Part shown: piece by piece, positions 7,829-63,902 of the stretch | How the letters are laid out: each line of letters begins with the position of its first letter | Numbering within the stretch: the first letter of the stretch is position 1 | Assembly: GCA_964035545.1 (NCBI GenBank) | Contig: OZ037773.1 | Location: 3,067,751-3,131,750 of the forward strand | DNA: 64,000 bases | Direction: 5' to 3' | Source of the DNA: Bugula neritina | Taxonomy: Eukaryota; Animalia; Bryozoa | Notes under the pieces: model-generated | Database searches by the model: none | What the model saw: the letters and a program-made list of their open reading frames with translations, nothing else | Told to the model about the DNA's origin: nothing | Translations under genes and position numbers: made by a program

Positions 7829-10800
7829 ATGAGAAACTGCCACTGCAGCGTTTTGTATAATCTGTCCTGTTTAGCTATCTACACTGCAGGTAGAAATTGT
7901 CCCATACCCAGTCTATAAAATATTATTCAGCTATAATATTATGCACACATGATTATATAGGACTGTTTACAGAACACAGTAGCATATAAGAATTTTTGCA
8001 GCTTACATGTATGTTTTTATGTGGTTTTAGCACAGCCATCTACAGAGATAGACTACAGTACTACAACTTCACCAGATTTCTATAAAGATGAGAAGATAAC
8101 TTTCACATATGAAGCATCTGGTTATAATAATCTGAGATCCTTACAGTTACGATATGAAGCTGATGGAGACAGCACAATCTACAGAAGTGGGTGTAGTAGA
8201 AGTTCTAAGGATGACACAGTATGGGTGAGCTTTTCAACTCCAGATATTATTACTCTCTCTGGAATAGAAGGACCTGGAGTCAGTGATGCATACTGTAACT
8301 CAGTTGGTAAACCTGAAGGTTTCACTCTTTCTGTACAACTCACTGTAACAGATTCAACACTCAATCGGAGGTTTCACTGTAGAGGGTTTGAAGGAGGAGG
8401 TGTGGGGGAAATTTTCTCCTCAGAAGTTTCAGTAGAAGTTAAAAGTAAGTTTGTAAAATAAACTTCATTTTTTTCTTAGAATATTAGTTGCCAACGTTTC
8501 TTTTATAACCCCTGTATGCGTGCAACTACTACCCTGCAACGTATACACAGATTATGTATCACATATATTCATTGATGTAATATTTATTGTCATTATACTA
8601 CTTGTTATACCTCCACTCAAATAATAAGATTCCAAATGAGAATAAAGTAACAACAATGAGCATTGCTGCAGTTTCTGTATATATGCAGCAACAATATCTG
8701 TATAAATTGAGTTTGTCATATTTCTTCCACTGGACATCTTCGTAAACAATTTGGATATATATTTATAACCTACTTATAGACATTTCATATAAACAATCAG
8801 CATAAATGAAATTACTGTATGTTCTTCACCGCATTCAACATGCAACGTGACTTCTAATTGGTTTTTGTTTTCAACAGCCGCTCCAATTGATATATTTCTA
8901 AATGTACAAGAAAAGATCACGGAAGGAACAGTGTTTAATTTTGATTGTATCTCTGCGGGGGCAGTTCCTGTGTCAAACTATGAATACGGTGAGTATTTTT
9001 TGAAATAGTTCCACAATTAATTCAGAAATAGCGTAGGAATAAAAGTAGAATATATATCACATCACTGAACCCCACCTGATATAATCAGAAATAAATTTTA
9101 AAGTGATTGAGACATATAGATTTTAAAATATTCGGGTTTTTTAAAAGCCAACACTATTGGGGTTCTTTCACAGAGTCTGACTATAACTATACATTAGTAA
9201 AACAGTTTCCATAAGATCTTTTGCTATATATACTGTGCTTGCATATACGGTAGGTATATAGCATAAATTAATGTCAACGGTGCAATAGTATAATAAGAAA
9301 TATTTACGTCTCAGAAGTAAATGGTAACACAGTGGCTGGAAAGTATACTCCTACTGAGACAGACAGAACTGGACTAACTTTATCTTGTACAGATACAGAA
9401 CATTCTAACTGGAAGAGAGGAAACACTAATAAAACTGTTACTATCATGCCACAGTGTGAGTATCATAAAAAAATTATATAATTATGCCACAGGTATATGC
9501 ATTATAGAATTAAAGCTTATATAAATTACCATACTTGGTGACATTATAACAAGCTCGCTTACAATAAATTTCATTGCTGCAGATTTAACCGTAAAACATG
9601 GTACAGATACTATAATCATAAAAGAGTTTAACCCAGGACAGTCTGATGTGAAATTAGAGTGTAGTCAACATGTGGATGCTAACCCACCACTCTCTACCTT
9701 TACTTGGACATATAATGGAGTTGTGACTACAGAAACATTTAATAAGCTGACTTTGACTTCTCAAGCAGATGGTGTATTAGAAACAGTTTCATGTACAGCT
9801 GAGAATGGTCTATGTAAGAAATTATTTAAAGAATTATCACCATTTACTGATTTGTTCAGATACAAAACTTTAGATAATTTTCACATAAATGATCCCATTA
9901 AATCTTTTGAGAAACATGCATATTGCAAAGTGATCAATACTATTAACAATCTGTATTAATTGATAATTTTCTGCCAATCAATTAATGCAGATTGTTAGTA
10001 ATATATTGATAACTTTGCAATATGTTTCTCAAAAACTTTAATGAAAGTATTTATGTGAAAATTATCCAAGCTCATTCAGAGAAGACGTGCAGATATTTTG
10101 GCCAAACTGATTTAAGCAAATTGTTGTTTATTCCTTACAAGAAAAGCATGTGTGAGAGAGATACAGAAATATTAAACAAGCAAAAGTATTTTAAATTATA
10201 GATTATTAAAGAGTGATTACTACCAATTTTGCTCATGACTTATAGGGACTGCTTTTTGCCTTCTGACAGTTTACAACGATAGGGATCTAATCTAAATTAA
10301 AAAGTGGTTGTATATATAATATGGGTTCAAAGCTTTATATAATCCTCAGAAAAAGTCTCATATTGAGAAAAGTCTTAACCGTGCATCCTTGCAGCAGCTA
10401 ATTATAGAACAAATGTATTCTGTAATTTGAATAGGAGATTATCCCCTCATTCACACTTACCGTATCGTACGCCGTAACAGCAAAAATAAAATGGCGAAGC
10501 TGTTGCATTTTGTCAACGGGTGTTCACACATTGCCGTAAAAGTACAACGCATGACGTTGAGCTGTGATCAATCATAATAAAGCCAATTCTTGTCTGCGGT
10601 GATTTGAACGCCTTTGAATATTATTTACAAATTATTCGCAACATTCTTATCAAAAGATGTTATATAAATGCTATTTACTAAATAAAAGCAATTACATGAA
10701 AAGAATCTTTTTTTTAAATATATTCGTTTTTAAAATAATTGTGCAAACTAATTTAAATAATGAATATTTAAGCCGTCCAAATCATTTTTAAGTTTTTGGT

Positions 10801-12171
10801 TTGCTTGATTTTGTGATTAGGGAAAGCTAGATTTTTAAGCTGGGTTTAATTCAAACAAGCCGGATAAAGATTTTTTAATCTTTTAAAACTTTTGAATTGG
10901 TTAAATTAAATCAAAAATAAGTGATTAAAATAAACTAGCGAAATAGTTCTTTAAATTTTAGTACCAGATCAACTCTACCCAATAGGAGCCCGCCGTGATT
11001 TTTTGAATCAAGCACTGCTTGATCAACGCCGCAACGTATACCGGAGTACGATTTAGCCCGGATGTTAACAAAATCGCTAAAATTTGCTGTTACGGCGTAC
11101 GGTACGGTAAGTGTGAATGAGGGGTATACTAGCAAGAAAGCTGTAACATGACAGACATAGATCAGTGTAATAGTAACTTATAGTACATATAAATAACTTT
11201 GTTGTGGTAACAATTTTATTATTTTTTTTGCAGCTGAAGTTGTTACTGTTTTGTGGGCTATAAAATGGAGTTGTTCTATCACACTGCCAAACACGTTGTC
11301 CACCAAAACTCTTTCTAAAACACCACCATGTGTAGACATAGACAAAGCTGCTCTGGGAGGAGCACTTGCTGGTTGTTGTCTGTTACTTATCATCACAGCT
11401 GGAGTGGCATTTTATTTTGGAAAGCTGAAAGGTAATATATAATTGAAATGTGTAATGGCACAGTAGCTTTGACTAAAAATATGTTACACTTCCACGTTTG
11501 ATATTTAGTTTGACTGCTGGGTGAATTATAACCAAACCTCAGAAATAGAGAATAATTACTAACTATCTATTCAAAGAAATTAGTTTTGATAAAAAGTTTA
11601 AAAACAATTTTATGATTAAAAAAAGGGAGTAGAAGGAACATCTAAGATCCGTCGGAAACAATATTATCTTTTTGTCATTAGCTTTATTTATTTTTACATA
11701 TATACAGGAATCAGGACAGGTAACTCCCCATACACAGAAATATCTGTCACTAGGACTGATAATGCCCAAATAACAGAAAGGTCTGTCACTAGGACTGATA
11801 ATTCCTCATACACGGAGATATCTATTACTAAGACTGATAACTCCCCATACACAGAAATGTTTTTCACTCGGACTGATAATTCCCCATACACTGATATGCC
11901 TGTCACTAGAATAGATGATCACAACTATGACTCACCAGATGTATCTCAGAGATACCAAGTCAGTCATTCTCCAGATAATGAGTCAAAGAGTATTACCAGG
12001 AAAGATGATTCATCATATGTAGAAATGTCTGTCACTAAGAAACATGTTGACAAGTATGACTCAGTTGATATTTCTCAACCACAAGCAGTCAGTCAGTCTA
12101 GAACTAACTTTGTAGATTCAGATGGCCATGTGGGACCTGCTCAGAATATGTATGCTAACATTGGACTTTAA
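7829..12171 (+). CDS. Gene A: 3-Ig-domain type-I transmembrane receptor with tandem cytoplasmic tyrosine motifs (~539 aa, 7 coding exons)
   Basis: Exons 7829-7889 (signal peptide MRNCHCSVLYNLSCLAIYTA), 8031-8444 (V-like D1), 8878-8988 + 9315-9455 (D2), 9583-9813 (D3, C..DANPP..FTW..C.AENG), 11234-11431 (D3 G-strand, stalk, TM ALGGALAGCCLLLIITAGVAFYF), 11708-12171 (tail ending MYANIGL*). All introns GT-AG and phase 1. Spliced length 1620 nt with no internal stop; exon sizes match paralogs B and C. Confidence 0.88.
10443..11124. mobile_element. 682-bp PIF/Harbinger-like MITE in gene A intron
   Basis: ~42-bp TIR CCCCTCATTCACACTTACCGTA.CGTACGCCGTAACAGCAAA with TAT 3-bp TSD on both sides. Confidence 0.88.
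11713..12078 (+). repeat. 39-bp coding minisatellite (13-aa unit RTDNSPYTE[I/M]SVT) in gene A tail
   Basis: Units start at 11713, 11752, 11791, 11830, 11869, with a YDS variant at 11908; a second diverged pair (SSYVEM, KYDSV) starts at 11998. Confidence 0.92.
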
Positions 12172-12559
12172 ATTCTTTGTTGAGTATTTTGGGCTTAGAA
12201 AAGAATTGAAAGCTTTTTATGCTAACTCTTATAGTGTACCAAAAATACTTGAACATAATATCATTTATTCAGAGCTTTTAGGCATTTTTGTGAACTTTGA
12301 AAACTTTATCTTAGTTGGAAAGTAAAATAAGCTGGAAACAGCGTTTGATATTTTAAAAAAAAAGTTGTTTCAATTTCTACCACAGTCACATTTCTAATAA
12401 AGAATTATAAAATTGCTTTTGAGATATTATTTTGCTATAGAATGTAGAAAGTAGGCAAGTAAAGCAAAAAGGCACATTTTGTTTATGAATGGGCACGTGC
12501 AGTGCTCGATTCTTATATTTTTCAAACAACAATTGATGTATGCAGTGTTGAGTTTATTG

Positions 12560-12640
12560 AGGTGTCCAGGTTTTGCTTAGCTTGCCTGCTTGCAAGCCAG
12601 AGGAGGTATTGGGTTCAAATCCCAGTGAGGGCAAAATTAT
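12560..12640 (+). mobile_element. tRNA-derived SINE head (Ala-TGC-like)
   Basis: GCCTGCTTGCAAGC anticodon-like arm and B box GGTTCAAATCC; related copy at 61015-61095 (-). Confidence 0.5.
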
Positions 12641-13320
12641 ATTTTTATTATTTACAAACATTTTACTCTTTTTCATAAGATATTCATACCAATAGTTAAA
12701 TAATTTTGCTCTGCTTTTGTTCCCTTTTCGACATTTATTTAAGGTACAGAACAGCTGAAAATTAAAAAATATATAATGGATAAATAGAAAAATTAGTTAA
12801 CATGCCTTGTTGAAATTAGACCATCTTAGTTATAATACAGCTAAGATACATTGTGAGTATAAAACACTAATAATTATTATAGTAAAATAGTCATTAAATA
12901 ATATTCAAAGGAGTCATCTTTTCTTTCACAGTGTACTGTAGCTCATAAAATCACTGAACTGAAACAATAACCCAGGGAGGTTATAGTTCAATGCATAGAA
13001 TGTACTAGCTAATCGAGCAACAACGAGGAAGTTGAGTACGTCTATACAATGTGTACATTGTTGACTTAACATATACAAACAACACACACTGATTATAGCC
13101 AATAGAAACTTTTCGGATGTAGTTAGTAGCCTATAGCTTGTGTCATTTTCTTTAATAGTCAAGTAAAAGCTAGTTTTCACTTTACTATATTATAGGTGTA
13201 GAAATGTAACTTATCTTCAACCTGCTGCTTTAGGATTAAGTTTCCTTTTACGACTTGAAGCTGTGGAAATTATATTACACAGTTTTATATAATAAAGACA
13301 ATAATTGAATCTTATGTAGT

Positions 13321-13460: not shown

Positions 13461-14364
13461 AATAGAAATAGTTACAGAGTAGTAAAAGCGTTGGGGCAGT
13501 GTTAGATGTAGTGGGTTACAAGACTAATATAATAACTTTTATCAAAATTCTAGTAAGGTGTATATATACTACTAATGGTCAAAAATTTACTCATCGTACC
13601 TCATACGCTCACAATAAAGCATTTAGCCATATTCTGCTTCATATCTTCACAGAACCCTAGTGGGTCTTTATAATTTGCTCTCATACCCTCATTATTCATG
13701 TTCTTTGAAACTTATTTTTCGATTTCATACTGTTAATTTTTTTCATATTCCCCTTGTACCCTTTTTTCTTTCTCTCCTATAACATATTTGCTCATTACTC
13801 AGTCATATACTTCTCTTATGTAAAAATTCACAGATAGTTTTAAAATATGTGAGATAATTTTAAGGTCAGCAAACTGAGACTAAAGCATGATGATTGACGT
13901 TGCAAATAATTATATTTCTTAGTAACTTCATATCTTTTTATGCTGCTGAGCTGACTTAACATACAATGGTAGTATAAAATACTACTTATTATAGTAAGAA
14001 TAGTTGTTATAATTACAGATCAGTAAAATTATAGTAGAGGAGTAAAAGGGTCAGCATGTGTGAACACTGTGTTATTACTAATATAATAATTGTGTAATGT
14101 ATTGATATGTTATATTATATTGATAAGGTATATCAATGCATTGTATTGATATGGTATATATCAGTGTGTTATAATTATATTGAAATAGTCTATTTTATAG
14201 GTTATATATTGGTGTGTTATATATTGACATGAAATATATTGTTATGTTACATATTGCCATGTTACATATTGATATGTTATATATATTGATATAGTATATA
14301 TAATTGATGTATGTTATATATTGATATTTTATATATATTGATATACTTAATATATTGTAGTGAG

Positions 14365-16206
14365 ATGACACACTTCTATTACTTCCTGTATTTTGTTGTC
14401 TACCTATCTATCCATTCTGCAGGTAAAATTATTCTTTACTTGGTTTATGTTATTACCCTTTGTTATATAACATTTACACATTGTCTAGAAGAATATATGC
14501 AGTCATTATTATAGCTAAAATAATGACTGCATGCATATATTCATCTTAAATTAATTTTAATCATCAATGTTTATTATATTCTTTATTTCTCTTGTGTGTA
14601 TAAATTGATAATATTATATAATATAACATAATACAGTATAATACAATATAATATAGTATAATATAATATAGTATAATATAATATAATATAATATAATATA
14701 ATATAATATAATATAACATAATATAATATAATATAATATAATATAATATAATATAATATAATATAATATAATATAATATAATATAATATAATATAGTGTA
14801 ACATAATATAACACAATATAATATTATATTATAAAGTATTGCACAATTTGCAGTATTACATATCATCTAATATCTCCAGCACAGCCATCTACAGAGATAG
14901 AGTACAGTACTACAACTTCACCAGATTTCTATAAAGATGAGAAGATAACTTTCACCTGTGAAGCATCTGGTTATACTGATCTGAGAATCTTACGGTTACA
15001 TTATGAAGCTGATGGAGACAGTACAGTCTACAGGAGTGGATGTGCTCCAAGTATAGAAGATGACACAGTGTGGGAAAGTTCTTCAACTCCAGATATTACT
15101 ACTGTCTCTGGAATAGAAGGACTTGGAGTTAGTAATGCAGACTGTAACTCAGTTGGTAAACCTGAAGGGTTCACTCTTTCTGTACAACTCACTGTGACAG
15201 ATTCATCACTCAAAGGGAAGTTCTACTGTAGAGGGTTTGAAGGAGGAGGTGTGGGAGAAATACTTTCCTCAGACGTTTCAGTCGAAGTTAAAGGTAAACT
15301 CTTAGTAGTAACTGTTTCTATTTTAATATTATATGGTGACAGACTATCTTCTGAAACAACTTTAACAAACTTTAACTTTCAAATTGCCATTCATCTCCAC
15401 GGTGACATTCAATTCCCTTGCCACAACGAGTGGTGGTGAAACCGCTATATCTTGTCTTGTATAAGGCATCATACATAGTTTTTACTTCATTTTGTTAGGC
15501 ACTTAGCAAGGTAACGCAGTATTTAACTTTTTCTGTATGAAGCTGTATAAGTAAAAATCCGCTACAAGATCAACCTGTCACACACAATGTGTTGTCAACA
15601 AGAGCAGAAATTTCCAAGCTAATAAGATTATTTAGTTTCAAGTGATTACTGCTCATAAACCACATCTCTATAGCTACGCCTATGCATGCACTGCAGTGTC
15701 TGCATGTTTATATAAAGCATTTTTGAAAAAAATTATATTTGGATAGTTACAAAATAGACATGAGTACTTGAAATTTTAAAAGAGTAATCATACGCAGTCA
15801 AATATTCCTCTCATAAAAAACAACTTTTCTATCTGTGTTGATTTCTTATTTAATGTACTGGCGTCAGCTTAACAAAAAACACATACTTTGTACTTGATGG
15901 CAGGTGCAGGTGTTTTGGTTAATTGCTAATCTATTTTGCTAGAGATGTGTAATTCATGGCTGTGCTCTTGTTATAACAGTTGCTGCATACCCTAGACTAC
16001 TCTCAAAAAACATCACGAAAGGAAAAAGTATAATGATTCTATGTTTCTATTTTATTTAAGATTTTTTCTATATATACATATATATCATATAGCCAAAGCT
16101 TGAGATAAAAGTATTGGCAAGAACTCTTGCTACAGTTGTACTGTATATTTGTTGACCTGAAAGTTTTACATGTAGCTTATTTTTGCAAAGGATATATCTA
16201 TATATA

Positions 16207-16295: not shown

Positions 16296-18505
16296 ATTGT
16301 ATCGTGAGATTTTTAAAAAACAGCGATAAAAAAGTGCTCAAATTATTACGTGTATAATAATGAGCAATTATATTATTGAGGAAAAGAGCAATTTAATTAT
16401 ATAGATGTTGTTTTATTGTACTACTAATAGTTTCATGCCTCTTCGGCACTCCTCAGGCACAATATTGACAAATTTAAATTTTTACATTAAGAAAATCAAA
16501 ATGCTAAACACAAGGTAAAACGTAACGAAAACATAGCAGTGGCTGTATTGTTATATAGGTTTGTAGGTGTAAATTAATATATAAAAACCATAATGTAATG
16601 TACAAACATAATTTATAGCAGATGCATGAAGTTTTTGTTGGGTGACTATTCTCTATGGGTATTTGTATATTATTTACTATAGTACTTATAATATAAATAG
16701 GCTACAGAGTTTCTAGGTTTTGTGGTTGCACAGTAAGAATTTTTTTGAGTGTCGGCAGGTTGATAAGAGTTCGTTTCGCTTGTTTAAAGTACACATGTTA
16801 GGTTTGTATAAAATAAAGAAACATTCCCATAGGCATAAATTACACCTTTTGGTAGTTGTGTTGTATGGTTTCGCTTTTCTTAATATTTTCCAGCTTATGT
16901 TGTGCTTAATGTTTTTGTTAGTTAGTTGCCAAATGTGTTTGCTAAGTTCTGTTTGATTTGCTTTCTCCTTGTTTTTAAATGATGATCTGTGGTTTGCGTA
17001 TCTTAGTTTGAACGGTCCTTCACTTAGGCCAATGTATGTTGCAGGCTCGTTTTCGGTAGTTTCCACAGTTGCTTGGTATATAACTCTGCTCTCCTGGCAG
17101 CTTCCTTTCAGCGGACAACTTTCTTTTTTTCTACAGTTGCAGTTTTTTCTAGGGGTTTTGTTTTGTTGCTTCTGTTTCTCTAATAGTCTGTTATTGTGGG
17201 CATTTATGGTCTGTTTTATGTTTGGCATGCAGCTGTAGCTAACCTTTATAGTGTTTTTGTTGATTATTTTATAGAGTGGGTGTTGTTTTGGAAATTCCTC
17301 ATTCATGATTTTAAAGAAGATTTTTGCAATTCTTGTGGTTACATGTTGGCTGTATGGTGGATTGTACCAAACAACTTTTCTTTTTCGGTTTCGAGATTTC
17401 TGTTGTGTGTTGTTTGCAAACAATTTGTATGTTCACATATAAATTCATTGGTATACAATTATTAACGTCCAAATTAATATATTTACCTTCTGTAGACTTG
17501 GCCAGAAAACCTGGTGTTCAAGATCCAATTGTGAAAAAGTTCAACCCTCTACAACCTGATGCTAAACTAGACTGTAGCCAACATGTGGATGCTAACCCAC
17601 CACTCTCAACCTTCACTTGGACATATAATGGCGTTGTGACAACAGAAACATCTAATGAGCTGACTCTGGATTCTCAAAAGAATGGTGTGACAGAAACAGC
17701 TGAATGTGTAGCTGAAAATGGTTTATGTAAGAAATTGTTTAAATTGTACCACTGATGATAATTTATGCATGCCGTTACTTTAAGCTTAAAAAAATTATTG
17801 ACACTAATTATGCAATACATTTTATTAGATGGTAAACTTACTTATAGTACTAAATATGATGCTCAGAAATAATACAACATTTTAAAATAGTTATTATGTT
17901 ATATTGACATTTCCCTTTTATTCTGTTCTTATTATGCAGCCAAATCGGTTACTATTACATGGACAATAAAGTGGGATAGTTCTATCACACTACCAAGCAC
18001 AATCCCAACCACGACTCCTTCTGAAAAACCACCATGTGCGAGCATAAACAAAACTGCTCTGGGAGGAGGATTAGCTGGTGGTTTTCTGTTACTCATCATC
18101 ACAGCTGGAGTAGCATTTCATCTTGGAAAACTAAAAGGTATTGAGTTGATGAAATTCAAATATAAAATAATAATTTCATTACAAAAATTTACCAAGCTGC
18201 ATTCCAAAAAGGTAATTGCAAAATAAAACCGACTTGCCTTGCTTCATTAAGGAATTGGGTCACAAGGTGTAACAAGGACTGATAACTCTCCATACCCAGA
18301 GATTTCTGTCAATAGGACTGATAACTTCCCATACACAGAGATGTCTGTCACTAGAACTGATAACTCCCCATATACGGAGGTGTCTGCCACTAGAATGGAT
18401 GATCACAACTATGACTCACTTGATATTATATTTGATAGACAAGCAGTTAATACAGATAACCATGAGGCACCCTCTGGGCAAACTTATGTAAACATCAGAA
18501 GCTAG
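14365..18505 (+). CDS. Gene B: 2-Ig-domain paralog (D1+D3, D2 lost) with TM and tyrosine-motif tail (~384 aa, 5 coding exons)
   Basis: Exons 14365-14422 (MTHFYYFLYFVVYLSIHSA), 14880-15293, 17496-17726, 17940-18137, 18252-18505 (ends TYVNIRS*). GT-AG phase-1 introns, 1155 nt open frame, AATAAA at 18573-18578. D1 is ~81% identical to gene A D1 (26 of 138 differences by hand). Confidence 0.82.
14610..14830. repeat. (ATATA)n microsatellite in gene B intron
   Basis: Direct pentamer array. Confidence 0.95.
15980..16060 (+). pseudogene. Relic of first D2 exon in gene B
   Basis: Acceptor ataacag followed by VAAYPRLLSKNITKGKSIMILC then a stop. ATCACGAAAGGAAAAAG resembles gene A ATCACGGAAGGAACAG (KITEG); position matches exon 3 of A and C. 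Confidence 0.5.
16192..16291. repeat. (TA)n microsatellite at the PLE 3' end
   Basis: Direct dinucleotide array. Confidence 0.95.
16292..17425 (-). mobile_element. 5'-truncated Penelope-like retroelement (RT C-terminus/linker + GIY-YIG endonuclease) in gene B intron
   Basis: ORF 16713-17423 has WYNPPYS, KVSYSCMPN, CNCR..CPL.G.C, VIYQA..TYIG (GIY-YIG), FKLRYANH and CNLCL.E, all typical of PLE proteins. The 3' region carries a hammerhead and abuts a (TA)n tract. Confidence 0.9.
16414..16464 (-). ncRNA. Minimal type I hammerhead ribozyme of the Penelope-like element
   Basis: Minus strand reads UAUUGUGC-CUGAGGA-GUGCC-gaaga-GGCAU-GAAA-C-uauua-G-UA-GUACAAUA: 8-bp stem I, CUGANGA box, 5-bp stem II, GAAA, 1-bp stem III and GUA cleavage triplet. 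Confidence 0.85.
18275..18430 (+). repeat. 39-bp coding minisatellite in gene B tail (3 units + YDSL variant)
   Basis: Units start at 18275, 18314, 18353, 18392 and encode SPYPEI, FPYTEM, SPYTEV, HNYDSL. Confidence 0.92.
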
Positions 18506-36396: not shown

Positions 36397-39300
36397 CATT
36401 TACTTTTACATGAATAATCAGTTTCTCAGTTTTTTTCTTTATCTTCATGAACAAGCATTAACTTTGAAGACCTAAAAATAATGCACACAATTTTGAGGTA
36501 TTTTTCTTCTTAAGTGTTTAAAATGTTTGACAGTTGGAAGAATATTTGGACATGATGTCAGTATGTTTCCTAGTTTTTCATATGGTTGAACTTGATTTTT
36601 GTCATTCTCCTATACTCCTCAAGTGTGGAGTCCTGAATGTACACTTTTACTACGCTATTGTTCAGGGTTGTTTTAATTTTACTCTGTTACTTTACTATAT
36701 TTTAATCAACAAACCCCTAATTTATATTGATGGTATTTATGGTTATATTTTAGTCAAGCTGACCTAACACTTGTTCAGTTCAGGCTCATCAATGTATGTT
36801 TGGTTTAGAAAATTAAACTGCAATGTGAAGTATTCAGACTAGTTACTTAACTAAAAAATGCACTAAATGCAAGGAAATATTATGTTAATATTTGTTACCA
36901 TAGTTCATTTCAAACTCATACATGTGATCAACAAAATACTTCATTTTGTTTTGCAGTGTAATCAAGATGAAATTATGAATGATGAAATTATGGATGGCAG
37001 CCAATTTATTTTGACTATCAGACAAGGACTACAGTTTTTATGGTAATTTCAATTTTTGAATATATCTCTTATATTATACATAAAATGTTCACCTTCTGCT
37101 TTAATTTGCAGCCAGGTTTTACTCATGGCTGCTGTATTCAAGTCACCTCATCACACAGCCAATCTACAAGACTGTCATAAAAGTTGCTATTATATTTTTT
37201 CACCAATTAATTAAAAGAAATAGAACTTCGGCTTCACAAGTGGTGTCACTCTCATACTCATTGTTTTACTTAATTTTGCCATCCTCCTATTCTTCACTGT
37301 ATTCTTTTAGGTCGCAGTGTTCTGCACTAATCTATGATCTCTTTTGATTTTTAACCCCCATGTTTAAATGTTTTGGTCTTGCTCCCTTTTTCTGGAGTTT
37401 CACACTGATGTAGCTGATTCCCTTCTTGTTTTATTGTTCTCTGCTGCATAGGTGCCCATATTATTCCAGCCTTCTCTTTCCCACAAATATAGTTACTGCA
37501 TTTACTGCCGCCCTGTCTCAGATCCCTTCATTTCTGGGAACGAAGCAATATTCCGAAGGCCCATTGCTCCGAAGGTCCATTAGTCCGAAAATTAGTACAC
37601 ACAGGCATCCTCACTGAGAATATCATTAATATCACTCACAATTCAGTTTAAGTTCTTGCTATATTATTGATCTGTGGGTGGCATGCGTGTTGCCTATTTG
37701 TGATTGTTTAGCCTGAGATTACACTATGATCAATAAGGGCTGTATCGTTTATCAACATTCCATTATGGCTGCTCCATAAACAAAGTACACACCAAGCTAT
37801 TCATTAGCCTGTCACCTCGCAAGCCTGTAATTAATAATGTACCGTACGCATAATCATGTTGATAGATGATGTAGCAAGTAGGCAACACACATGCCACCCA
37901 CAGAGCAATAACATAGCTAGAACTTAAACTGAATTGTGAGTGAAATTAATGATATTCTCATTGAGGATGCCTGTGTGTACTAATTTTCGGACTAATGGAC
38001 CTTCGGAGCAGTGGGCATTCAGAATATTGACTAGTTACCCTCATTGCTTATGTAGCACAACTCATCTCCATGAAACCTAATTGATCCTCTAGGTACTAAG
38101 AACTAGGGGCTGTCTGCAGTCATAATTTATTGCCAAAAGACATTGTCAGTCAAATGCACATTTTATATCAGCATTTTCAATTTTGTTGGCGTCTTCTTGA
38201 TGGAGCCTTACCCTATTTCTTTTTCTACCCCTGTTTTGCATACTCTGTTGCTATGTGTCACTTCAATGAAACCATCGCCTCAACTTATTTAGTTTGACTG
38301 TTGAAATATATTTTGCTTTTACAGGTCTAAAAGAAAGTGGCCATTTGAGTTTAAGTGCAGCTTCACTATTGACAAGAACATCTACGTTAGAGAAGAAAAG
38401 CATCTAGCTATATAATCAAGATGATTTGCATCCTGATTGTTACGATACCGCATGGTTCTGTTGTCATACTATTGTTCTTTCATACCTTTGTACTTTTTAT
38501 TGTAAAGAGCTAGGCTTGAGCTCTGTAATAGGCAAGCCTACAATATATATTGACTGACAACAAATATGTCATCTCTCTCCCACATAATCGCAAGGAGTTA
38601 CATTCTAGTATTGGTTCTAAAAACTCACACCTTAGTAATTAGATGCATAGCACAAAGTCTTAGCAATAGGGAGTATTGGTAAATTTTCCACATGAGTGGT
38701 GAGAAAATAACACTAACTTGAGACCTTTCTAAAACTCAACATTGCATTGCAAATAAGCTATACTTATTGTGCTTTATTCAGTGCTAGCTGGTATTTTTCA
38801 GACTGTTGGCCACAGCAAAGTATTTTGCCTTTTTTTGTACACATAGCCTAATGGTTGATTTAAGAAAATTGGAAGCTGCAGCCTACATGCACTGCAATTC
38901 ATCATTCTCATTCCGAAATGGATTTCTCATCACCTCATGGAACTAATTACATAACGAAGGAAACCACAACTGATGAGTTACTGCAACTACAAATTCACAA
39001 AATGCTCAGTCATAGAAGCGAAGTACACTGCGTTTCCATTATCGCATTATGCGAATGGATTTTTTCATTCGGCTAATGGGAACAGTTACATCCGATGAAA
39101 CGCAACTATAAGTTAATGCAAACCACAAACCGCAAATAATCCGTACAGAATTCATTCGCATTATGCGAAGTCATGGAAACGCAGTGATAAAGAAGTCAAT
39201 GTCAGCCCTGGTGAATATTTACCTAAAAGGCAACAAACAAATTTTACTGCACCATTTCAACAAGTTAAGATATAAAACGCCTATTCTTTTAATTTGATTG

Positions 39301-42300
39301 TTCAGCTTTATTTTATTTTTAGATTGTACCAGCTGGTGCAATAAAAAATATATTTGGAAAGGCTTCAGTTTTATAGAGGAAAAGCAGTGAAATAACTTTC
39401 GTTTTACCATGCACCCCTAATCAACGCTCTTGTAGTTTAAGAGCTTAGGTTAATAAAGTTTCTCAGCTAATTAATCCCACCTGCACACATTTTTACACAT
39501 AATTATCAGTCGTCTCAGCACCATGCAATAGTTAGATGAAAAGGGTCATTTATTGACAATTAAAAGCCATAGTTAGCAGAGTAGTTAAAAGCCTTTTTTC
39601 AATAATAAGTTTTTGGTTGCATTTTTCAAGTTTATTCTTTCATTGTAAATTAAGATAAAAACAAAAACTGCAGGGCTTACCTACAGCCAAGTAGAGAAAT
39701 ATTCAATATGCTGTCAAAGGCAAACAAACTATATGAACTATTATAATATGATATTAACTATGCACATGTGCTATGCTTCTATTTATTTTTGAATTGTGGC
39801 TCAGATATGCTAAATACTCGAACTGCGGTTACTTCTTTTTCTGTTCAGCTGTATAAGTCAATAGGTAGTATTTTAGGATTGAGGTTTTTTCTTAAATAGA
39901 ATTTCTATAGGGTAGTCTTTAGTATAAATTCTTTGTCTGCTAAAATCTATGAGCAAAATAATATTTATAGTACTCCGTTTTGAAAGAATAGCACACCATT
40001 TGGTACAGGAATTTGGCCCCTATAAAAATGCAAGTGTTGGTGATGGAAGTAGTAAACGAATTGCTACTGCAAGTGTAGAGTAGTGTGACTTTCAGCCATG
40101 ACAGAACGTACTTCAGAGCATAATGACATAGCATAACGTCAATAGTTGTGCATTACACGGTTTAGTTGCCTGCTGGCCCGTTTGTAACACATTCTGTTAG
40201 TGCAAATAAGTGGTAATCCAGTAGGCCTAATGGAACTGCATTCGTGAACTATTTATAGTTAACATATTATGTCAACCACAATATCATTACCCTTTGACCA
40301 TCTTTGTTTTCCATATGCCTATTGTGAACTGCATAATGTTAGCCAACATGTTTTGTAAGCTTATCAGTTTAGCTATAGCTATATAAATGCTTGTAAGCTT
40401 GCTCGCACCTGGCAATACCATGGTAGGCCAACTGCTAGGACCATGACTAGTGCAGCCACAATTAATATAACCAACCAGCTTTCACTGTAGTGTGGCCATA
40501 TGTTTGGCTTTGTTAATATTTTGTCAGAGTGCAAGTCTCAACTGATGCCATAAATTGCAATGTGAAAACTATCATGAATCAAGTAATATGTTGGTAAAGA
40601 TATGCAAAAATGTATAACAAGTCACAAAGTTATCTCAAAACAATCAGGGTTTCAAATTTCATCACTGATGGCCATAGCTCAAGCAAGTTGAATATCATTG
40701 CAACAAAAAGGAAGCAACTTATTTTCTCCAAAAAATTTGTTATTGTAAAAATAAGTAAAACTAATTTAATTTTTAAAATTTACCTCTAATATTAGTTTAG
40801 ATCTTTTCATGATTTGCGGACGTAAACCTAAAATTAAGGCTGCATGCATGTTTTCTCAAACCAAAGTGTGTTTACCTATAAAAGATAATTTGACTTGTCA
40901 ATCTATTACCTAGGTCCTAGTACATCAGTGTATATTTATATACCATAGCTCTGACCGCTGGCTGTGCCTTAGTAATAATATACAAACTACAGTTTATTTT
41001 TAACCGTTGGTTTATTTAATCAAGATACCTTTGCAAGTAGCAACAGAGTCATAGGCCAATTTTAAAACAAGATGGCAATCCACTGCTAGTAAACACCCTG
41101 ATGGAATATAACCCACTCATTTTTCTAGCTGTTGTTTATATCATTATAGTATAATCCCTTATGTATTGGCATTCTTCCTAAGATGATGCATTGGCTTCGT
41201 GGTAAACCGCGTTTCCTTTGCACTCGTTGGGTATGGGTTCAATCCTCGCAGTCAGCTAAATTTTTTGCAATCTTGCATTCTTGTCAAATACTTCCACTAA
41301 ATTATTTTTACTAATTTTACACATTGATATGTGTAATAATAGTGATGGGTCAAATATGACTATAGTTGTAGAATTTCTTTCACTTTTTAAATAACACTCA
41401 ACAGGTGGACAGTGTATATAGTACATACATATTAGTTAGATACTGAACACTGGGCTAAATATAGGGTTTAGTTATTAAGTAAATATTGATAGTTGGTGCA
41501 ATAATGGAGAAATTAAGTTATGTACATGTTCTTGTGATTACATTTTTATTAACCGCACCCCACGCTAAAATTTGTTATCCAGATGAAGAAGGTTAAGCTA
41601 TCAAAGCTTTTAAATTACTGCACAGAAGTGTAAAAATAGCAGCCTATTTCTTCTTGTTATATAGTGAAATGACATTCATTATGTATATAGGCATATATAT
41701 ATATATTTTAATTCTGTTACATCATATTTTAGCTTTAAAACAAGCATGTTATGTCCATTTGTTTATCACACCCCTGCAGTAAATATGTCAAAAATTCCTT
41801 ACTTTTGCTACCTAAAATTTCTTTTAAAATATAAGCAGCTACATAGAGCATTTTTTCAAGTTAGAAAATATGTATATATATTTTTCAACTACGTTTTAAA
41901 AGGAATACAAATATGTAAACCACAAAGCAGTGATTGTCTTCTTTCAATGCCATATTTTTGATGACACCAAGAAAGAAGGTGATAATGCAACTCCTAAGAG
42001 CATGTGCACTAAATCGCTCCTCTGTCTGAGAGTATACCATTTGTATTAATGTATGAAGTCTTCAACATATATTTCAACTTATTTTTGCAAGTAACTCATG
42101 ACAGTAAACTATATGCTTGCTTTTCTTCATGTGTGTGTGCGTGTGTGAGTGTGTGTGTAAAAATGCAGCACTCATAATAGTTGCTATTTTATGAACAGCT
42201 TACTATAGCTACAGTTATATGTAATTGCATAGGAGTGTTGCAAGTGTTTGCTAAAAGATGGTATATAAAACATGTCGACGAATTTGTTGTAGAAAAATTT

Positions 42301-43450
42301 AAATAATTACTTAGCATTTAGCAATAAAATTGTTCATGTACAAATCAGAAACACCAAGTTGTATGCATATATTTCAAATAGTATATGCATGAATTTGCAA
42401 AAAAAATTAGAACTTATACTTTCACTATGAGTATATGTTTTATATATGTGCTCATTTTGTATATACTGCACAATATGTTATTTACAATGTTAAACCAAAA
42501 TAATCAGAACTCAATATAGTGTAATACAGGCACATCTACAATGTTAACAAATATAACATTAAAAACAAGAAACAAAATTGTTGGTATCTTTTACTTAATT
42601 TTTTACAAGCAAAAAATTATTCTTGCCGCAAACTAAATTTAAATGCTGAGGTTCGTAAAGTTATATGTTTGTTAAATTATTTTGCATTTGTTTATATTCT
42701 ACAAATAATTTCTACATCTTTTATATAATTGCGATATTTCTTTTCGTCTACTACATGCAGCTCATTATATGCATATGTAGGCTATATACAATGCAGCATA
42801 AAATTTTATAATACTAAGCAAAAAATGCTATGAAAATAAAAACATTTTACAAAATGATATTATATTATGGTAGCAATAAAGTTGTAATAGACTATTATTT
42901 AATGAGAAGACAATTATGTCTTTATAATGAAGATTGATAAATTTATAATATGAGCTGAAATTGAGTGAGAAGACAATTATGCTTTCAAAATACTTACAAG
43001 ACTAAATTCTTATCTAATAGCTACAGTATTTAATATCCTTTGTTCAGAACAAAGTCTAAAAGGAGCGGATTTAAATAAAAATTCAGACCTGCATTTGTTA
43101 AAACTTTTCAATCAAAATTATTACATTATATTATTCTTTCTCATAACTCCTAGCTTCTAAAACCTTTTGCATGAAAAAATTGATTTAGAATGCAAATTAC
43201 TGCTAGAAATTGCCGTGTTTTAATGTCAACCCTAACTGTATCCACCACTTGTTTTAGTTGTTACGATCGTTGCCTAACCAATGAAGTTGAACTGGTTGTA
43301 CCTCCAGCCAATCAATTACTTATTTCAATTGCGCCTCATTAGGCTAGGATCGTTGACGAAATCTATATAATGTAATACAAATCCCATTACCACTGATTGA
43401 CCCGAAGTTCTCTACGACTTTTATAGTGGTATAGGATAATAGATATACTG
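36397..43450 (+). repeat. Segmental duplication copy 2
   Basis: Apparently identical to 1-7054; diverges at 43451 (GTTAAAA versus CACTTAC at 7055). Confidence 0.95.
37536..38040. mobile_element. Duplicate of the 505-bp MITE
   Basis: Lies inside segmental duplication copy 2. Confidence 0.85.
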
Positions 43451-57585: not shown

Positions 57586-60240
57586 TAGTCTGGCAGAACT
57601 GGGGGTTAGGTTCGCAATCTCGGATAAAGTTTTTTTCTCTTTTGATTATTTATCTTGAGGGTCCAGGTAGATGTTTCCAGGTGGGTGTGGACCTGCCACC
57701 CTTGAGCATTTCGAGAAATCCAAGATGGCCGCCAATTATGAAAAAATCGTAATCTAGTCGGCATAAAGTCTATATATTATGTTGCAAAAATTAAAATAGA
57801 TGTGTATTTTTAAAATGAATATGTGCCATGCCAGTAAAAGGAATCAAAGTAAAAAGCCAAGAGACATGTTTCTCAGCTCAAAAATCGGAATTGCTTCAAT
57901 AAAACATCACATATGGTGCAGAGAAATGATAGAAGGTTTTTGAATAACTGTTTGGACACTGGACAGATATATAAAGAAAAATATTGCTTATTGCCAGTGA
58001 ATAGAAAGTGAAAAAAAGATACAGATGCAGCATATTGCTCAGCTAAAGTTAAAATTGAACATAATTATATATAATCGTACAAATGCGACAAACTTCCACT
58101 CATGTTCATATTAAACACCTTTTTCATTTTTTTCTATCATTAGCATTTGTTAGAAATGTTAGTTCATTGCAGCACACTCCTGTTACTGCTTCACAAGGGC
58201 AGAACTCTGTGCATGGGATAGATGTACTAGAATAGCCATATTGTGTTGTTTTGCATGATTGTTGGCTTTCACAGGAGCATTTAATGAATTTGGACCATTT
58301 TACTTTATTTAGTACACATCAGCAGATTATGGTCAAACATTCTAAAGTTTGCTCAAAATTCATGAAAACTTACTATATGGGGTAATAGAATTTGCTGATT
58401 CTATCTATGCATAACAAAAATGACTGGGAAGAGGTCCTGCAAGCGCGGCGTCATTATCATACAAGCTAAATATACATTTGTGAATCATCACGGCTTATAT
58501 AATATCCCAATGTAATAACAAATTAGGAAAAGACATAGAAAATCATGCATAATTGGAAAAAGTCTTAATTATTCAGTTTTATTTGTTAAAATTTTGATAG
58601 TTTGAGGCAAAAATCTATATGCAATAGCAGCTAAATTGTAAAAAATTGCCAAAAGCTAGAGTCGTCGAGTATACACCAAATTAACTAACATGATCTACTT
58701 CATAATACTGTCTGGTGTAAGCACAACATCATTTTCTACTCCTTTTGGGAAAAGAGATTCTATTAGATTCCCTATCACCTACCAATGTTCTAGTGGGTTT
58801 AATGCCACAGTTTTATATGGCTACCTAGAGGTGTGCTTTGGTGACATTGTCCAATAGCTTCATCTGTAGGAGGCAAAGTACATAAGTTAAAGGCACATCG
58901 CAAATAGCATTGCTGACCTTGGTTTCCCAAGCCTTTTGTCTTGTAGATGTCATGGAGGAGCACTTTGCATAATTGTAGCAACATAGCATAAACTTGGTAG
59001 CTTGTATGAATAGTAATCCTGAAAAAAGCACTAGTGTCACCAAATCACACTTTCTTTCTACCAAGACATTTAGTATGACTCCCTTTCCAATATTTTACAT
59101 CGTTGCCCCTGAGAGGCCGTGAGAAGGCAGCAAATTGTTCATTATAGGGCTTTGTCTCGAACTTTCTCATCCAGTACGCTGTGGTCCAGGATGAGTAGCG
59201 GTTTTGCAGGGCACCAAGTGCTATCAGAGTGTCATCTGATTCTATTGTCAACATCTTCATCTGAGAAGCCACATTTCAGTATGCCATCCTTCACTGTATC
59301 CATTAACCTTTTTTTGCCCTCCCTCTCTTTCTCTTTCTCTGTATCCTCATCTCAGCCACCATTATAATATCTTCCTCCGTATCTCTTCTGTGCACATGCC
59401 CATACTATTGAAGAGGTCTCCTCCTCATGTCTATTGCGATAGCTTCTATTTTGGCCTCCTCCTTTATATTATCATTTGTTACATGGTCTTCCCAATTCAT
59501 ATTGTAAATGTTTCGAAGCATCCTCATCTCAGTTGCACTTATCTGCTTCAATATTGACAAGAGCAACTGGGTGGCATCATTCTTTGAGTGGGTCATTGCC
59601 GAGTTCAATCTTCCGTTTGACAGACTCCCTGTCCTTTGAATCAGATTAGATTCTTGATTGCATCTCATCCTTATGAGCAGTAAAAGCATTTATTTCAGAC
59701 TCATCCCTGATGTCACTGCAGCCATACTGTATCTTAACGTACGTTGCATGAGTTTCGGATTTAGTGGTGATGCCAATGATTCCCCTTGCTGTGACCAAAT
59801 CTTACGAAAGTTACCTCAATGGTCATGTCCAACCAGATGCCGTCGAGCTGGCCGCGTTTATGATGCATTGTGTGGTTACCAGCCGCAAATTCAGTCCTTA
59901 CATCTTGTGGCATGACCTTCGCGCTATTCAGATAGTGCATTTCCTCTTCCATTGCTAGGTGTAAGGCCCAGTCTCCTTCTCTAACAGCTATGATGTGGGT
60001 GTTGATGGTAAAAATTTCTCCAATAAAGCACATGGTCCACAGTTTTGCTGTTCTTGAGCTCTCTGCAATCTTAATCAACATCTTTGCAAGCTTTTTCATG
60101 CTAGTGATTACACTTTCATCAAGACTGGCATTAACAGTTCTCCCACCAATATTCTCAGACCTTGTACATTCTGGAGAAACTTTTTCGATTTAGCATTTTG
60201 GAGAAACCACCAAAAGTAGAATTAACTACTTCTACCAAAT
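57586..60240 (-). mobile_element. Decayed Academ(X)-like DNA transposon
   Basis: Minus-strand fragments SRTAKLW..VREGDWALHL, GIWLDMTIEVTF, LPPTDEAIGQ and the terminal Cys-rich FIKCSCESQQSCKT..PCTEFCPCE..CCN (~58160-58290); TAGTCTGG terminus at 57586. Confidence 0.6.
59340..59545 (-). mobile_element. LINE (RTE-like) ORF2 C-terminal fragment nested in the Academ-like remnant
   Basis: ISATEMRMLRNIYNMNWEDHVTNDNIK...RRRPLQ*YGHVHRR, cf. the EM..LR..W.D..N..RL.W.GHV.R motif. Confidence 0.7.
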
Positions 60241-61014
60241 CACTTTCAGCTATTAGTGTTCCAGTGCACTCAACATAGGTCATTAAAAAGGGAGAAATTA
60301 ATAGTAAACGTTAATGAAAGGGGATTGGTATGAAAAAGGTAGGGAACCACTGTTCTAATAAATGTATTACTTCCCTCAGCATGAAATATATTTTCATTCA
60401 TAAAAAACTGTTTACAAATGCTTTTAGAGGAAAAGTGAAATGTGCTGATTGTAGAAATAGTTTTTGAAAGCAAAAATGTCAATATTTAGATAAATGATGT
60501 GTCAATAATAAAGCAATTAAATTATGTTAAGAAGCCATGGTGCTGTGTTATTAAGATTGTTGACCCCTTTTTATAACTTTAAAAAACATAGCAAGAGTTT
60601 TAAAACTGAAAATAACTATTAAGTTGGCAGCTCAACAAACCTTTTCGATAAGCATGCCAGTTGGAAATAAATTGCTATTTAGCTCATATGGCAATGGCGT
60701 GTTTTGCCTGATGTATTTATTGACCAATTTATAACAGAGTTTTCACTTTAAAAATCATGGACAAAATATCATGAGTTCAATTAAGATGCATAAATTCGGT
60801 TATATTGTCAACTCCCACAAAAGGTGTCCAATACAGAATATTATAAACATTTTATCCGCACTACTCTATGAAAAAGTTAGTAGCTTATAAATACATCTTT
60901 TAATTCTTATGATAAAATATTACCACATCAACATACTTAGCTTCATTATAGCCAGTTATATGATTACAGTTATAGATAGTATATTATATTTATGGTTATT
61001 ATAATTAATTCAAA

Positions 61015-61095
61015 AACTTTGGCCTCACCTGGAATTGAACCACAGACCTCCAGCTTGCAAGCAGGCATGCTAAACTAATACAACACAGGGGCTGC
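61015..61095 (-). mobile_element. tRNA-derived SINE head
   Basis: Reverse complement GCATGCCTGCTTGCAAGCTGGAGGTCTGTGGTTCAATTCCAGGTGAGG, related to 12560-12640. Confidence 0.5.
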
Positions 61096-61343
61096 TAGTT
61101 AAACCCAACTCGACAAATATACTATACAATGTATAGCTATGTATTTTCTGATTTCACCCATTTGGAAGTTGCAGCTTATTTTATGACAATGTTATATGTT
61201 ACTTTTTAAGTAGTCCTGTGATATGGTTTTTCCTCTTATTATAACAACATTTATATACGTAGGTATACAATAAATCAGTATTTCATTGCATTATTCAAAC
61301 TCACTGTGTAATTGTATATATATATATGTTATCTTGTAGTGAG

Positions 61344-63902
61344 ATGATAAACTACTACCACCACTTCCTCTATCATCTGTTCTGTTTATTAATCTATGCA
61401 ACAGGTAACAAAGTTGTACCTCATGTATATTGTTTATTTTATTATCACCATTTATTATATATTTAAACTTGACAATTAGGAGTGATGCATACTAAATTAG
61501 TGTAGAGCACTGAAAGAGTTATGTGTAACTTACACTGTCATAACATATTTCTAGCACAACCATCTACAGAGATAGACTACAGTACTACAACTTCACCAGA
61601 CTTCTATAAAGATGAGAAGATAACTTTCACATGTGAAGCATCTGGTTATACTGATCTGAGAACCTTACAGTTACGATATGAAGCTGATGGAGACGGTACA
61701 ATCTATCAAAGTGGATGTAGTCGAAGTGCTGAGGATGACACAGTATGGGAGAGTGCACCATCTCCAGATATTATTATTGTCTCTGGAATAGAAGGACCTG
61801 TAGTCAGTAATGCATACTGTAACTCAGTTGGTAAACCTGAAGGGTTCACTATTTCTGTGCAACTCACTTTAACTGATTCAACACTCAGAGGAAAGTTCTA
61901 CTGTAGAGGATTTGAAGGAGGTGTTGGAGAAATTCTCTCCTCAGAAGTTTCAGTGGAAATCAAAGGTAAGTTTGTGAAACAAAAATTGTATTATTTTTCT
62001 AGAATACTTTAGTTGCAAATATTTTAAATGATTTTTCTTGCAACGATTGTGCGTCCTTACCGCATATGGATTTACATACGTGAATTATCTAAAAATTGCG
62101 ACAGCAATAAAACCCATTCCCGCATATGTATCACAAAGATTTATAAATGTATATATTGTTTGTAATACTCAATATTCAACCTTGATTAGAAAATTCTAAC
62201 AAGAAAAAAATATCAGCAATGAATGAGTCAATGCAATTTCTATATACAGAGGAAACATTTGCATAATACTATGAACTGAACTTTGATAATTATTATAAAT
62301 TATTTTCATTTAAGCGATTAAGCAATGCCACTTTATATATAACATAATATAAATTTCTATATTCTGGAGTGCAGGTCTTACTTTTGTTTTTATTCAACAG
62401 TGGCTCCAACTGGTATATCACTCAATAAACCAGAAACTATCATAGAAGGAGAAGAGTTTACTTTTGATTGTAACTCTACAGGAGCAGATCCTGTGTCAGT
62501 CTATGAATACAGTGAGTATTTTTGAGTTCATCACATATTATTTATTCTACAAAATAAGTTAAGTCTAAAACAATACAGTACGTTGCAATATTAGATTGTA
62601 ATTTGATAAAATCAGTAATCCGTTTATACCAAGTAAAGAAAGATAAGTTTTGAAATATTCAACATTTAAAAAGTTGAAGCCAACAATTGTTTTGATTTTC
62701 AGATTCTAACTACAGCAGCTATCTAATGATTAGAAATGTACTAGCTATAGTACAATTTTAACTATTATAAATAGTTCTATATATAGTATCAAATCCTTTG
62801 TTATATGAGCTGTGCTAGCATATATTAAATAACATGCATATGACTGCCTAGAGTGCAATGATATATATTGACTTATTTTTATATTTCAGAAGTAAATGGT
62901 AACACAGTGGCTGGCAGATATACTCCTACTGAGACAGACAGAGCTGGACTAACTTTATCCTGTACAGATAAAGAACATTCTAACTGGAAGGGAGGGAATA
63001 CTGAACAAACTGTTACTATCACACCACAGTGTGAGTATCATCAAAACCACACTACTCGTTTGCACAAGTTTGTAAATAAGTTATGCAGCCTAAACTACAT
63101 TTGGTGAAGTTAAACAACTATAAACGAGTCTACAATTTTTACTTTGTAGATTTAGCTAGAAAACATGATGAAATTAATATAATCATAAAAGAGTTTAACT
63201 CTGGACAATCTGATGCTAAACTGGATTGTAGCCAACATGTAGATGCTAACCCACCACTCTACAGCTTCACTTGGATATATAATGGACATTTCACCAGAGA
63301 AACATCTAATGAGCTGCCTTTAGGTTCTCAAGCAGATGGTGTCACAGAAACAGCCTCATGTACAGCTGAAAATGGTCTACGTATGAATTTATATAATCAG
63401 CTATATTACAATTTAGGAGTATGCTAAGTTCACAATATTTAGATAGTTTCCTTATAAAAGTTACATCATCTCATTTCATCAAGAGAAGCTTATTTTCGAC
63501 AAAACATTTTTACCAAAAGTTCGTTTCTATTGTTAGCTATCAATGATTGCGCAGTTAGTTTAACAAGTGAGCTGCGTTCACCTCACTCATGACTTTATTC
63601 ACATAATTTTCAATTTATTGACATTTTGATTGTTCAACTACTGTAGTTAGCTTTATGGAGCAAAATTACTGCATTATAACTCAAACTAACTCTTTGTTAT
63701 TCTCATCCTTTTGCATTTTGTTTGTTTTCTGTAGCAAGAGCTATTATTATATTGTGGGCTATAAAATGGACCAGTTCTGTCACACCACCAAGCACAACGT
63801 CAACAATCATTAACAAAGCTCCTATGAGTGGGGGAATTGCTGGTGGCTGTCTGCTGCTTATCATCACAGCTGGAGTAGCATTCTATCTGGGAAAATTGAG
63901 AG
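61344..63902 (+). CDS. Gene C: 3-Ig-domain paralog, 3'-partial (cytoplasmic exon expected beyond the window)
   Basis: Exons 61344-61404 (MINYYHHFLYHLFCLLIYAT), 61555-61965, 62401-62511, 62890-63030, 63150-63380, 63735-63902 (TM MSGGIAGGCLLLIITAGVAFYL). Same exon sizes and phases as gene A apart from a 3-nt D1 deletion and a 30-nt stalk deletion; open frame throughout. Confidence 0.87.

Follow-up and report, generated by a model that had tools for sequence, protein, structure and literature searches.

A 64,000-nucleotide stretch of the genome of the bryozoan Bugula neritina (assembly GCA_964035545.1, contig OZ037773.1, positions 3,067,751 to 3,131,750; hereafter the window, with coordinates counted from its first base) carries three paralogous genes, here called A, B and C, which are predicted to encode cell-surface receptors of the immunoglobulin (Ig) superfamily (IgSF) with tyrosine-rich cytoplasmic tails. 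The host DNA is contig C9 of a 216-Mb assembly, and the window is AT-rich (about 31% GC). Comparison of the window with itself revealed three plus-strand sets of paralogous exons, at about 8–12 kb, 14.4–18.5 kb and 61.3–64 kb, with 79–89% nucleotide identity; because tblastn between the paralogous exons gave E ≤ 1e-70, their likeness is not due to chance. Reading frames and splice sites yielded a seven-exon gene A (539 amino acids), a five-exon gene B (384 amino acids) and a seven-exon gene C (499 amino acids), with GT..AG introns and phase-1 junctions throughout and frames open over five to seven exons. Phase-1 junctions are usual for Ig-domain exons. The shared layout comprises a signal peptide, the domains D1, D2 (missing from B) and D3, a stalk with a transmembrane (TM) helix, and a Tyr-rich tail. 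A first-pass annotation made from the sequence alone had described three same-strand paralogs of this layout between 7829 and 63902, and the exon models confirm both the layout and the ends, 7829 being the start of the ATG of gene A and 63902 the last base of the TM exon of gene C. The open reading frame (ORF) listing gives mere fragments of the three genes, as that annotation had also remarked.

All exons of the three genes lie on the plus strand. In gene A, exon 1 (7829..7889) holds the ATG and the signal peptide (MRNC...IYTA/AQPS) and ends in a phase-1 GT donor, and exon 2 (8031..8444) encodes D1, a 138-codon domain with a predicted V-set Ig fold and, in this copy, Tyr at the site of the B-strand Cys. 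The two halves of D2 are encoded by exon 3 (D2a, 8878..8988), which is kept in gene C and 12 other paralogs, and exon 4 (D2b, 9315..9455), within which RNA-labelled contigs start at 9317. Exon 5 (9583..9813) encodes D3, a C2-type Ig domain according to a profile match, exon 6 (11234..11431) the Ser/Thr/Pro stalk and a TM helix without charged residues, and exon 7 (11708..12171) a cytoplasmic tail of 153 amino acids with nine Tyr. Gene B consists of a signal peptide exon (14365..14422), a D1 exon for a predicted V-set domain with the canonical Cys pair present (14880..15293), the exon for the putative C2-type D3 (17496..17726), a stalk and TM exon (17940..18137) and a tail exon (18252..18505; 83 amino acids). 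It has no D2 exons; where they are missing, in the intron between D1 and D3, lies a mobile-element insertion with a minus-strand ORF of 236 amino acids (16713..17423), for which a Pfam search gave no significant match. Gene C again has separate exons for the signal peptide (61344..61404), the putative V-set D1 (61555..61965), D2a (62401..62511), D2b (62890..63030), D3 (63150..63380) and the stalk and TM helix (63735..63902), the stalk being 10 amino acids shorter than in A and B. Its tail exon, encoding 124 amino acids, lies on the same strand 279–655 bases past the end of the window (L043:1029-1405). The D3 acceptor is common to all three genes (9583, 17496 and 63150). The domain numbers of three, two and three given for A, B and C in the first-pass annotation are thus reproduced, as are the differences in stalk (stalk/TM exons of 198, 198 and 168 nt), tail length and number of Tyr motifs.

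The sequence CTTGTAGTGAGATGA runs from the bases directly before the start codons of A, B and C into the codons themselves (7815-7830, 14351-14366 and 61330-61345) and may be an acceptor of an intron in the 5' untranslated region (TGTAG/) or a conserved start context. Genes A and C have a second in-frame ATG 18 nt upstream of the start codon. Intron 1 of gene B, between the signal and D1 exons, contains a tandem repeat of about 300 bp (14564-14866) with a unit of 5–10 bp, one frame of which reads ILYYI....

Sequence profiles did not recognise D1. The domain of A or C matched no Pfam family at E-values up to 1, including V-set (PF07686) and the other Ig profiles, and a D1 profile searched against PDB sequences matched no Ig chain. 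In contrast, an AlphaFold2 model based on an alignment of 21 paralogs was confident (predicted local distance difference test, pLDDT, 90.9; predicted template modelling score, pTM, 0.85) and showed ten strands. Its top 50 Foldseek matches were antibody VHH, VL and VH domains and CD8 (E about 1e-4, TM-score 0.55–0.69), and the best VIA-align matches were T-cell receptor (TCR) V, antibody V and CD8 domains, with Z scores of 9.4–10.7 (TCR V 10.7) and a root-mean-square deviation of 2.8–3.1 Å over about 110 residues; D1 of nectin-3 was also among the structural matches (Z 8.8). Language-model features of D1 pointed to Ig and V-set clusters as well as to unnamed molluscan fragments. The confident model and its structural matches therefore predict D1 to be a V-set Ig domain, so that the earlier label of a V-like Ig domain is supported by predicted structure, though not by Pfam. 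Of 25 close paralogs, 24, B and C included, have the B/F-strand Cys pair (C26 and C116), and gene A alone carries Tyr instead of C26. A second conserved pair (C54 and C88) completes the four Cys that are shared, together with W64, across 21 paralogs. At the position of the invariant C-strand Trp stands Tyr41 in 24 of the 25 sequences, and the conserved W64 follows the C' strand.

The domain D3 spans 77 codons with a Cys...W...Cys core, of which C18, W33 and C62 are invariant in an alignment of 18 sequences. The profile built from this alignment matched C2 Ig domains of MAG, CEA and CD22 with E-values from 7e-6 to 1.4e-4, while the single-sequence Pfam search gave only a sub-threshold Ig_3 match; the profile identifies D3 as a putative C2-type Ig domain. 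D2 is split between its two exons by a phase-1 intron and shows the residue pattern F.F.C ... YEY.VNG ... L.L.C. Alignment of D2 with the D3 and D1 profiles in hhalign was not significant, the alignments being shallow. Of the one or two short Ig domains originally claimed, D3 is hence backed by a profile and D2 by its residue pattern. The interval between D3 and the TM helix consists of about 35 Ser/Thr/Pro-rich residues and contains no Fn3-like membrane-proximal domain.

The tail exons contain a coding minisatellite of 39 bp (13 amino acids), the period of which was confirmed by TRF; gene A has 4.7 copies at 11727-11909 and gene B 3.0 copies at 18278-18395. Motifs were assigned as immunoreceptor tyrosine-based inhibitory (ITIM) or activation (ITAM) motifs by regular-expression matches only. 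The tail of gene A contains two ITIM-type SxYTEI motifs (SPYTEI and SSYTEI) 22 residues apart, three YxxM and a terminal YAN, and that of gene B two ITIM-type motifs (SPYPEI and SPYTEV), one YxxM and a YVN, including the arrangement YPEI-x9-YTEM. In the tail of gene C, only YxxM (three) and YxN motifs (two) occur. The tails end in ...YANIGL, ...YVNIRS and ...IELKILC, respectively, and show no afadin-type PDZ motif. Five neighbouring paralogs on the minus strand share one order, namely YxEL-x9-YTEL followed by two to six YxxM, NYDSL and a terminal YVN. The YxEL-x9-YTEL element fits the regular expression for an ITAM, and either half taken singly fits that for an ITIM. The repeat length of 13 residues places one Tyr motif after another at the spacing of an ITAM (YxxL-x9-YxxL). 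The preservation of motif order in the five further paralogs, while the repeat number varies, argues that the tail motifs matter. Tails of the A/B/C type were found almost only within the local cluster described below. On another contig, at G000:C4:16602450-16602635, the C-terminal 62 residues of the gene A tail recur in isolation, with 82% identity and no D1 match nearby.

Contigs from four RNA-labelled runs (three studies) cover the D1, D2b, D3, TM and tail exons, and coverage of the introns is zero except for a dispersed repeat at 10367-11121. In two of the studies, contigs that start at 9317 carry upstream letters corresponding to the end of the D2a exon, which is the predicted D2a–D2b junction. 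Being 93–97% identical to gene A, the contigs indicate that close family members or alleles of another strain are transcribed and spliced as modelled, but are no evidence of expression of gene A itself; the splicing check proposed with the first-pass annotation is thus answered for one junction in the family. The repeat at 10367-11121, in intron 5 of gene A between D3 and TM, is a dispersed, transcribed or abundant element that is very deep in all four runs, with many variant contigs.

In the 216-Mb genome, tblastn gave at least 72 matches to the D1 exon, about 14 of which contain stops or are fragmentary. They lie mostly on contig C9, in blocks at 0.03–1.09, 3.07–3.25 and 4.14–4.2 Mb; C1, C2 and C4 hold a few. 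Matches to the other exons (37 for D3 and 10 for the TM exon) are likewise concentrated on C9. The local cluster spans about 170 kb, with A, B and C on the plus strand and about a dozen more loci on the minus strand; the 43 kb between B and C hold no further family exons. Beyond this genome the family is hardly visible: a search of 1.84 billion representative proteins with a D1 profile gave only 44 matches, 40 of them under 230 amino acids. Of seven that were read, one is P0027 and the other six are genomic single-exon ORFs that continue beyond the splice donor. Among ten source records that were looked up, eight are nameless (assemblies of metagenomes or sequencing runs) and two are named, namely P0027, a hypothetical protein of Bugula neritina with only 80–82% identity to the present genome, and a fish CD22-like protein that matches over short stretches only. 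The modest identity of P0027 means that the genome represents a relative or a divergent strain, or is missing that particular copy. The family therewith appears to be restricted to a Bugula-like bryozoan lineage and to comprise at least 70 copies. These genome and protein searches support the first-pass annotation in its view of a lineage-specific, clustered IgSF receptor family with Tyr-motif tails, and its failure to recognise an orthologue is matched by the D1 profile search, in which none was recognisable elsewhere. Metagenome contig L063 was considered as a measure of allelic polymorphism and rejected, since it matches exon by exon at 74–91% only and hence derives from another species or represents a missing paralog.

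At G000:C9:3157879-3161750, 26 kb past the end of the window (L028-L030), eight D1-type exons stand in tandem on the minus strand at a spacing of about 490 bp. Roughly half of them are intact and the rest have stops or frameshifts, and no D3, TM or tail exon intervenes. This array could be a multi-V gene, a set of alternative exons or a gene-conversion reservoir.

Selection on D1 was estimated from 25 intact exons by pairwise and tree-based counts. The ratio of nonsynonymous to synonymous divergence (dN/dS) had a pairwise median of 0.55 and a tree-based value of 0.58, and lay at 0.33–0.47 among A, B and C. Of all exons in the three genes, D1 shows the strongest conservation; the amino acid identities of about 81% (A and B) and 82% (A and C) noted at first were reproduced exactly, with dS of 0.22–0.28. 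Identities are lower for D3 (70–72%, dS 0.39–0.47), the TM exon (62–65%) and the tail (47–75%), and dN/dS lies between 0.3 and 0.7 in all exons except the 36-codon D2a (1.26 between A and C). With dN/dS of 0.33–0.58, the exons appear to be under constraint, though relaxed, combined with an exon-by-exon mosaic of divergence. The description of the cluster as diversifying is thus not borne out, and domain-wide positive selection on D1 was rejected as a candidate (omega 0.55–0.58). In D1, replacement changes are concentrated where residues of the C, C' and C'' strands and of the C'–C'' region are exposed (36, 38, 55-58, 65-69, 85 and 87), while the F strand, the FG loop and the start of G (KFYCRGFEGGGVGE) are nearly invariant. 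Sites 36, 55, 58, 65, 67 and 105 carry many replacement changes, with a pooled ratio of about 1.3 to which no significance test was applied.

Synonymous divergence of D1 is about half that of the other exons in the same genes, and introns can be aligned only partly, with lower identity than exons. In a runs test on polymorphic sites, long tracts shared between D1 exons reached p ≤ 0.05 in 43 of 300 pairs and p ≤ 0.01 in 19 (3 expected), the pairs not being independent of each other. This excess suggests gene conversion and is best taken as a lead. Pseudo-exons with stops, the domain loss in gene B and the variable repeat number are signs of gene gain and loss, in agreement with the birth-and-death pattern proposed at the outset.

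The window also contains two 100% identical stretches of 7,054 bp, at 1-7054 and 36397-43450, the left end of the former being cut by the window start. Their interpretation as a segmental duplication of the locus was rejected, because both are copies of a dispersed repeat. This repeat occurs at full length at least 13 times on seven contigs (98–100% identity), has no long ORF and contains an internal inverted pair of 155 bp; it resembles a mobile element, probably a non-autonomous one, with very recent activity. One copy, together with mobile-element debris, occupies the 43 kb between B and C. Searches of the window with Rfam found no family, and Pfam searches of its other ORFs gave nothing relevant. 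Elsewhere in the assembly, COX1 of the small contig G000:C321, which is probably mitochondrial (TGA being read as Trp), recurs almost unchanged within a chromosome-scale contig (G000:C6:11174072-11175412); either mitochondrial DNA was recently inserted into the nuclear genome or this copy is an artefact of assembly. A stop-free COX1 piece of 109 amino acids matched only unnamed fragments, at 84% at most.

Among known systems, the Alr genes of Hydractinia (PMC9546547) resemble the A/B/C family in several respects. Both form clustered lineage-specific expansions with pseudogenes; in both, an N-terminal domain missed by Pfam yet with a V-set fold precedes smaller Ig domains, an aromatic residue substitutes for the C-strand Trp of D1, and a single-pass TM segment leads into divergent tails with ITAM or ITIM motifs. 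In contrast to Alr, however, the A/B/C proteins retain the canonical Cys pair in D1 (except in gene A) together with a putative second disulphide, have no Fn3-like membrane-proximal domain and carry tails derived from the 39-bp minisatellite, and no sequence homology between the two was detectable in the ten match records looked up. With the vertebrate Siglec/CD22, SIRP, CD300 and KIR/LILR receptors and the teleost NITRs the family shares C2 domains behind a V-set D1, tandem clusters shaped by gain and loss, and ITIM-type tails. The best solved relatives of the D3 profile are C2 domains of MAG (Siglec-4), CEA and CD22, and this Siglec match is a generic one. Unlike the vertebrate ITIM/ITAM receptors, to which no orthology was found, the A/B/C family has uncharged TM helices in all eight members read, and YxxM repeats dominate its tails. 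The comparison with Hydractinia Alr and SIRP/Siglec/CD300 receptors made in the first-pass annotation consequently holds as an analogy of layout and genomic behaviour and, by the tests run, not as homology.

We consider it probable that A, B and C are lineage-specific type I membrane receptors with, as their most likely function, immune or non-self sensing. Such receptors would (i) present a membrane-distal V-set D1, held by the B–F disulphide and the second Cys pair and with a conserved F strand and FG loop, on top of one or two small C2-type Ig domains; (ii) be linked through a short Ser/Thr/Pro stalk and one uncharged TM helix to a tail whose Tyr motifs are supplied by the repeat; (iii) bind a ligand through D1, which would lead to phosphorylation of the tail tyrosines; and (iv) recruit SH2 proteins to the phosphorylated tails, possibly a SHP-type phosphatase, a Syk/Shark-type kinase, PI3K p85 or Grb2. 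Outputs would then differ between paralogs, as in the paired immune receptors of vertebrates. The family may have grown and decayed by tandem duplication, exon loss and change of repeat number, and probably by exon-level gene conversion. According to this proposal the receptor family itself is new, while its kind is already known.

Several observations weigh against this interpretation. Gene A has lost the canonical B-strand Cys and might be a decaying copy. The 68-residue D3 model gave only weak Foldseek matches to beta-sandwich domains (GPVI, the C2 domain of CD147 and Fn3; E ≥ 0.16), and D2 looks Ig-like from its residue pattern alone. The TM helices are uncharged in all eight proteins read (A, B, C and the five neighbours), which gives no pointer to pairing with an adaptor. 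The ITIM consensus [SIVL]xYxx[ILV] was not found in the tail of gene C, nor was the ITAM consensus YxxL/I-x6-12-YxxL/I in those of A, B and C, and short Tyr motifs readily match regular expressions by chance. The RNA-labelled contigs are 93–97% identical to gene A and so may stem from paralogs or another strain. Finally, V-C2-C2-TM is also the layout of the nectin/CADM adhesion molecules.

This shared ectodomain layout, together with the nectin-3 match to D1 and the dN/dS below one in all domains, would fit an expanded family of nectin/CADM (Necl)-type adhesion or developmental IgSF proteins, in which the tail tyrosines act in trafficking or in attachment to the cytoskeleton rather than in immune signalling. 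Wide conservation is typical of nectin/CADM-type proteins, and their genes are low-copy and encode PDZ- or FERM-binding tails. The present family differs in its at least 72 D1 exons, with pseudo-exons, domain loss and variable repeat number, and in the absence of an orthologue outside its lineage in the D1 profile search. Its tails are built of Tyr repeats and end without the afadin-type motif, and the five neighbours keep a Tyr pair at ITAM spacing, so that we regard an adhesion family as unlikely. Still less credible is a decaying, non-functional family or an assembly artefact whose frames are open because the copies are young. It would account for the many D1 matches with stops or of fragmentary nature, the structural Cys missing from gene A and the mobile elements inserted throughout, the two identical 7-kb copies among them. 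Yet splice sites and frames are intact over five to seven exons despite dS of 0.2–0.9 between copies, dN/dS is well below one, exons are more conserved than introns, and the RNA-labelled coverage is confined to exons and includes a spliced junction; moreover, the identical stretches are copies of the dispersed repeat rather than a misassembled duplicate of the locus.

Allorecognition or kin recognition by a histocompatibility-type complex, with homophilic D1 binding between colonies or larvae and allelic matching as for Alr1/Alr2, is a further reading, which we rate as somewhat more doubtful than adhesion. The animal is colonial, the combination of V-set D1, small Ig domains, TM helix and ITAM/ITIM-type tails in a clustered expansion with pseudogenes parallels Hydractinia Alr (PMC9546547), and the B. 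neritina genome paper reports weak similarities to Alr1 (PMC7576161). Kin recognition in Bugula is itself contested: kin-biased larval settlement was reported for one B. neritina population (cited in PMC10078279), whereas in other Bugula populations the finding was not reproduced (PMC10078279). Against this reading, D1 is not hypervariable, with dN/dS of about 0.55 and the highest conservation among the A/B/C exons, the Fn3-like membrane-proximal domain of Alr is missing from A, B and C, and Alr homology was not found among the 10 of 44 D1-profile matches looked up, the two named ones being bryozoan and fish proteins. A more far-reaching version, which we offer as a long shot, would make the 170-kb cluster a bryozoan counterpart of a histocompatibility complex or an immune-receptor complex, in which gene conversion exchanges V-type exons whose diversity is maintained, the eight-exon array serving as donor reservoir or as alternative exons. 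The low synonymous divergence of D1, the excess of long shared tracts and the position of the array 26 kb past the window are compatible with it. If true, diversification of a V-domain receptor repertoire would have evolved independently in a colonial protostome.

In summary, our analysis describes a family of putative IgSF receptors in B. neritina, for which immune or non-self sensing is the function we favour. No bryozoan IgSF receptor family was described in the literature searched (titles, abstracts and a few full papers). Bryozoa is a colonial phylum for which, to our knowledge, almost no molecular immunology exists, and B. neritina is known for its bryostatin-producing symbiont. The family provides concrete candidates for receptors of immunity, symbiont handling or kin recognition. 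Its 13-residue tail repeat, which sets Tyr motifs at ITAM spacing in copy numbers that vary among paralogs, may offer a simple route to the tuning of signalling. With at least 70 predicted V-set receptors missed by sequence profiles, the family would add a protostome case to the finding made in Hydractinia that V-set domains have an older origin and a wider distribution than profile searches suggest.

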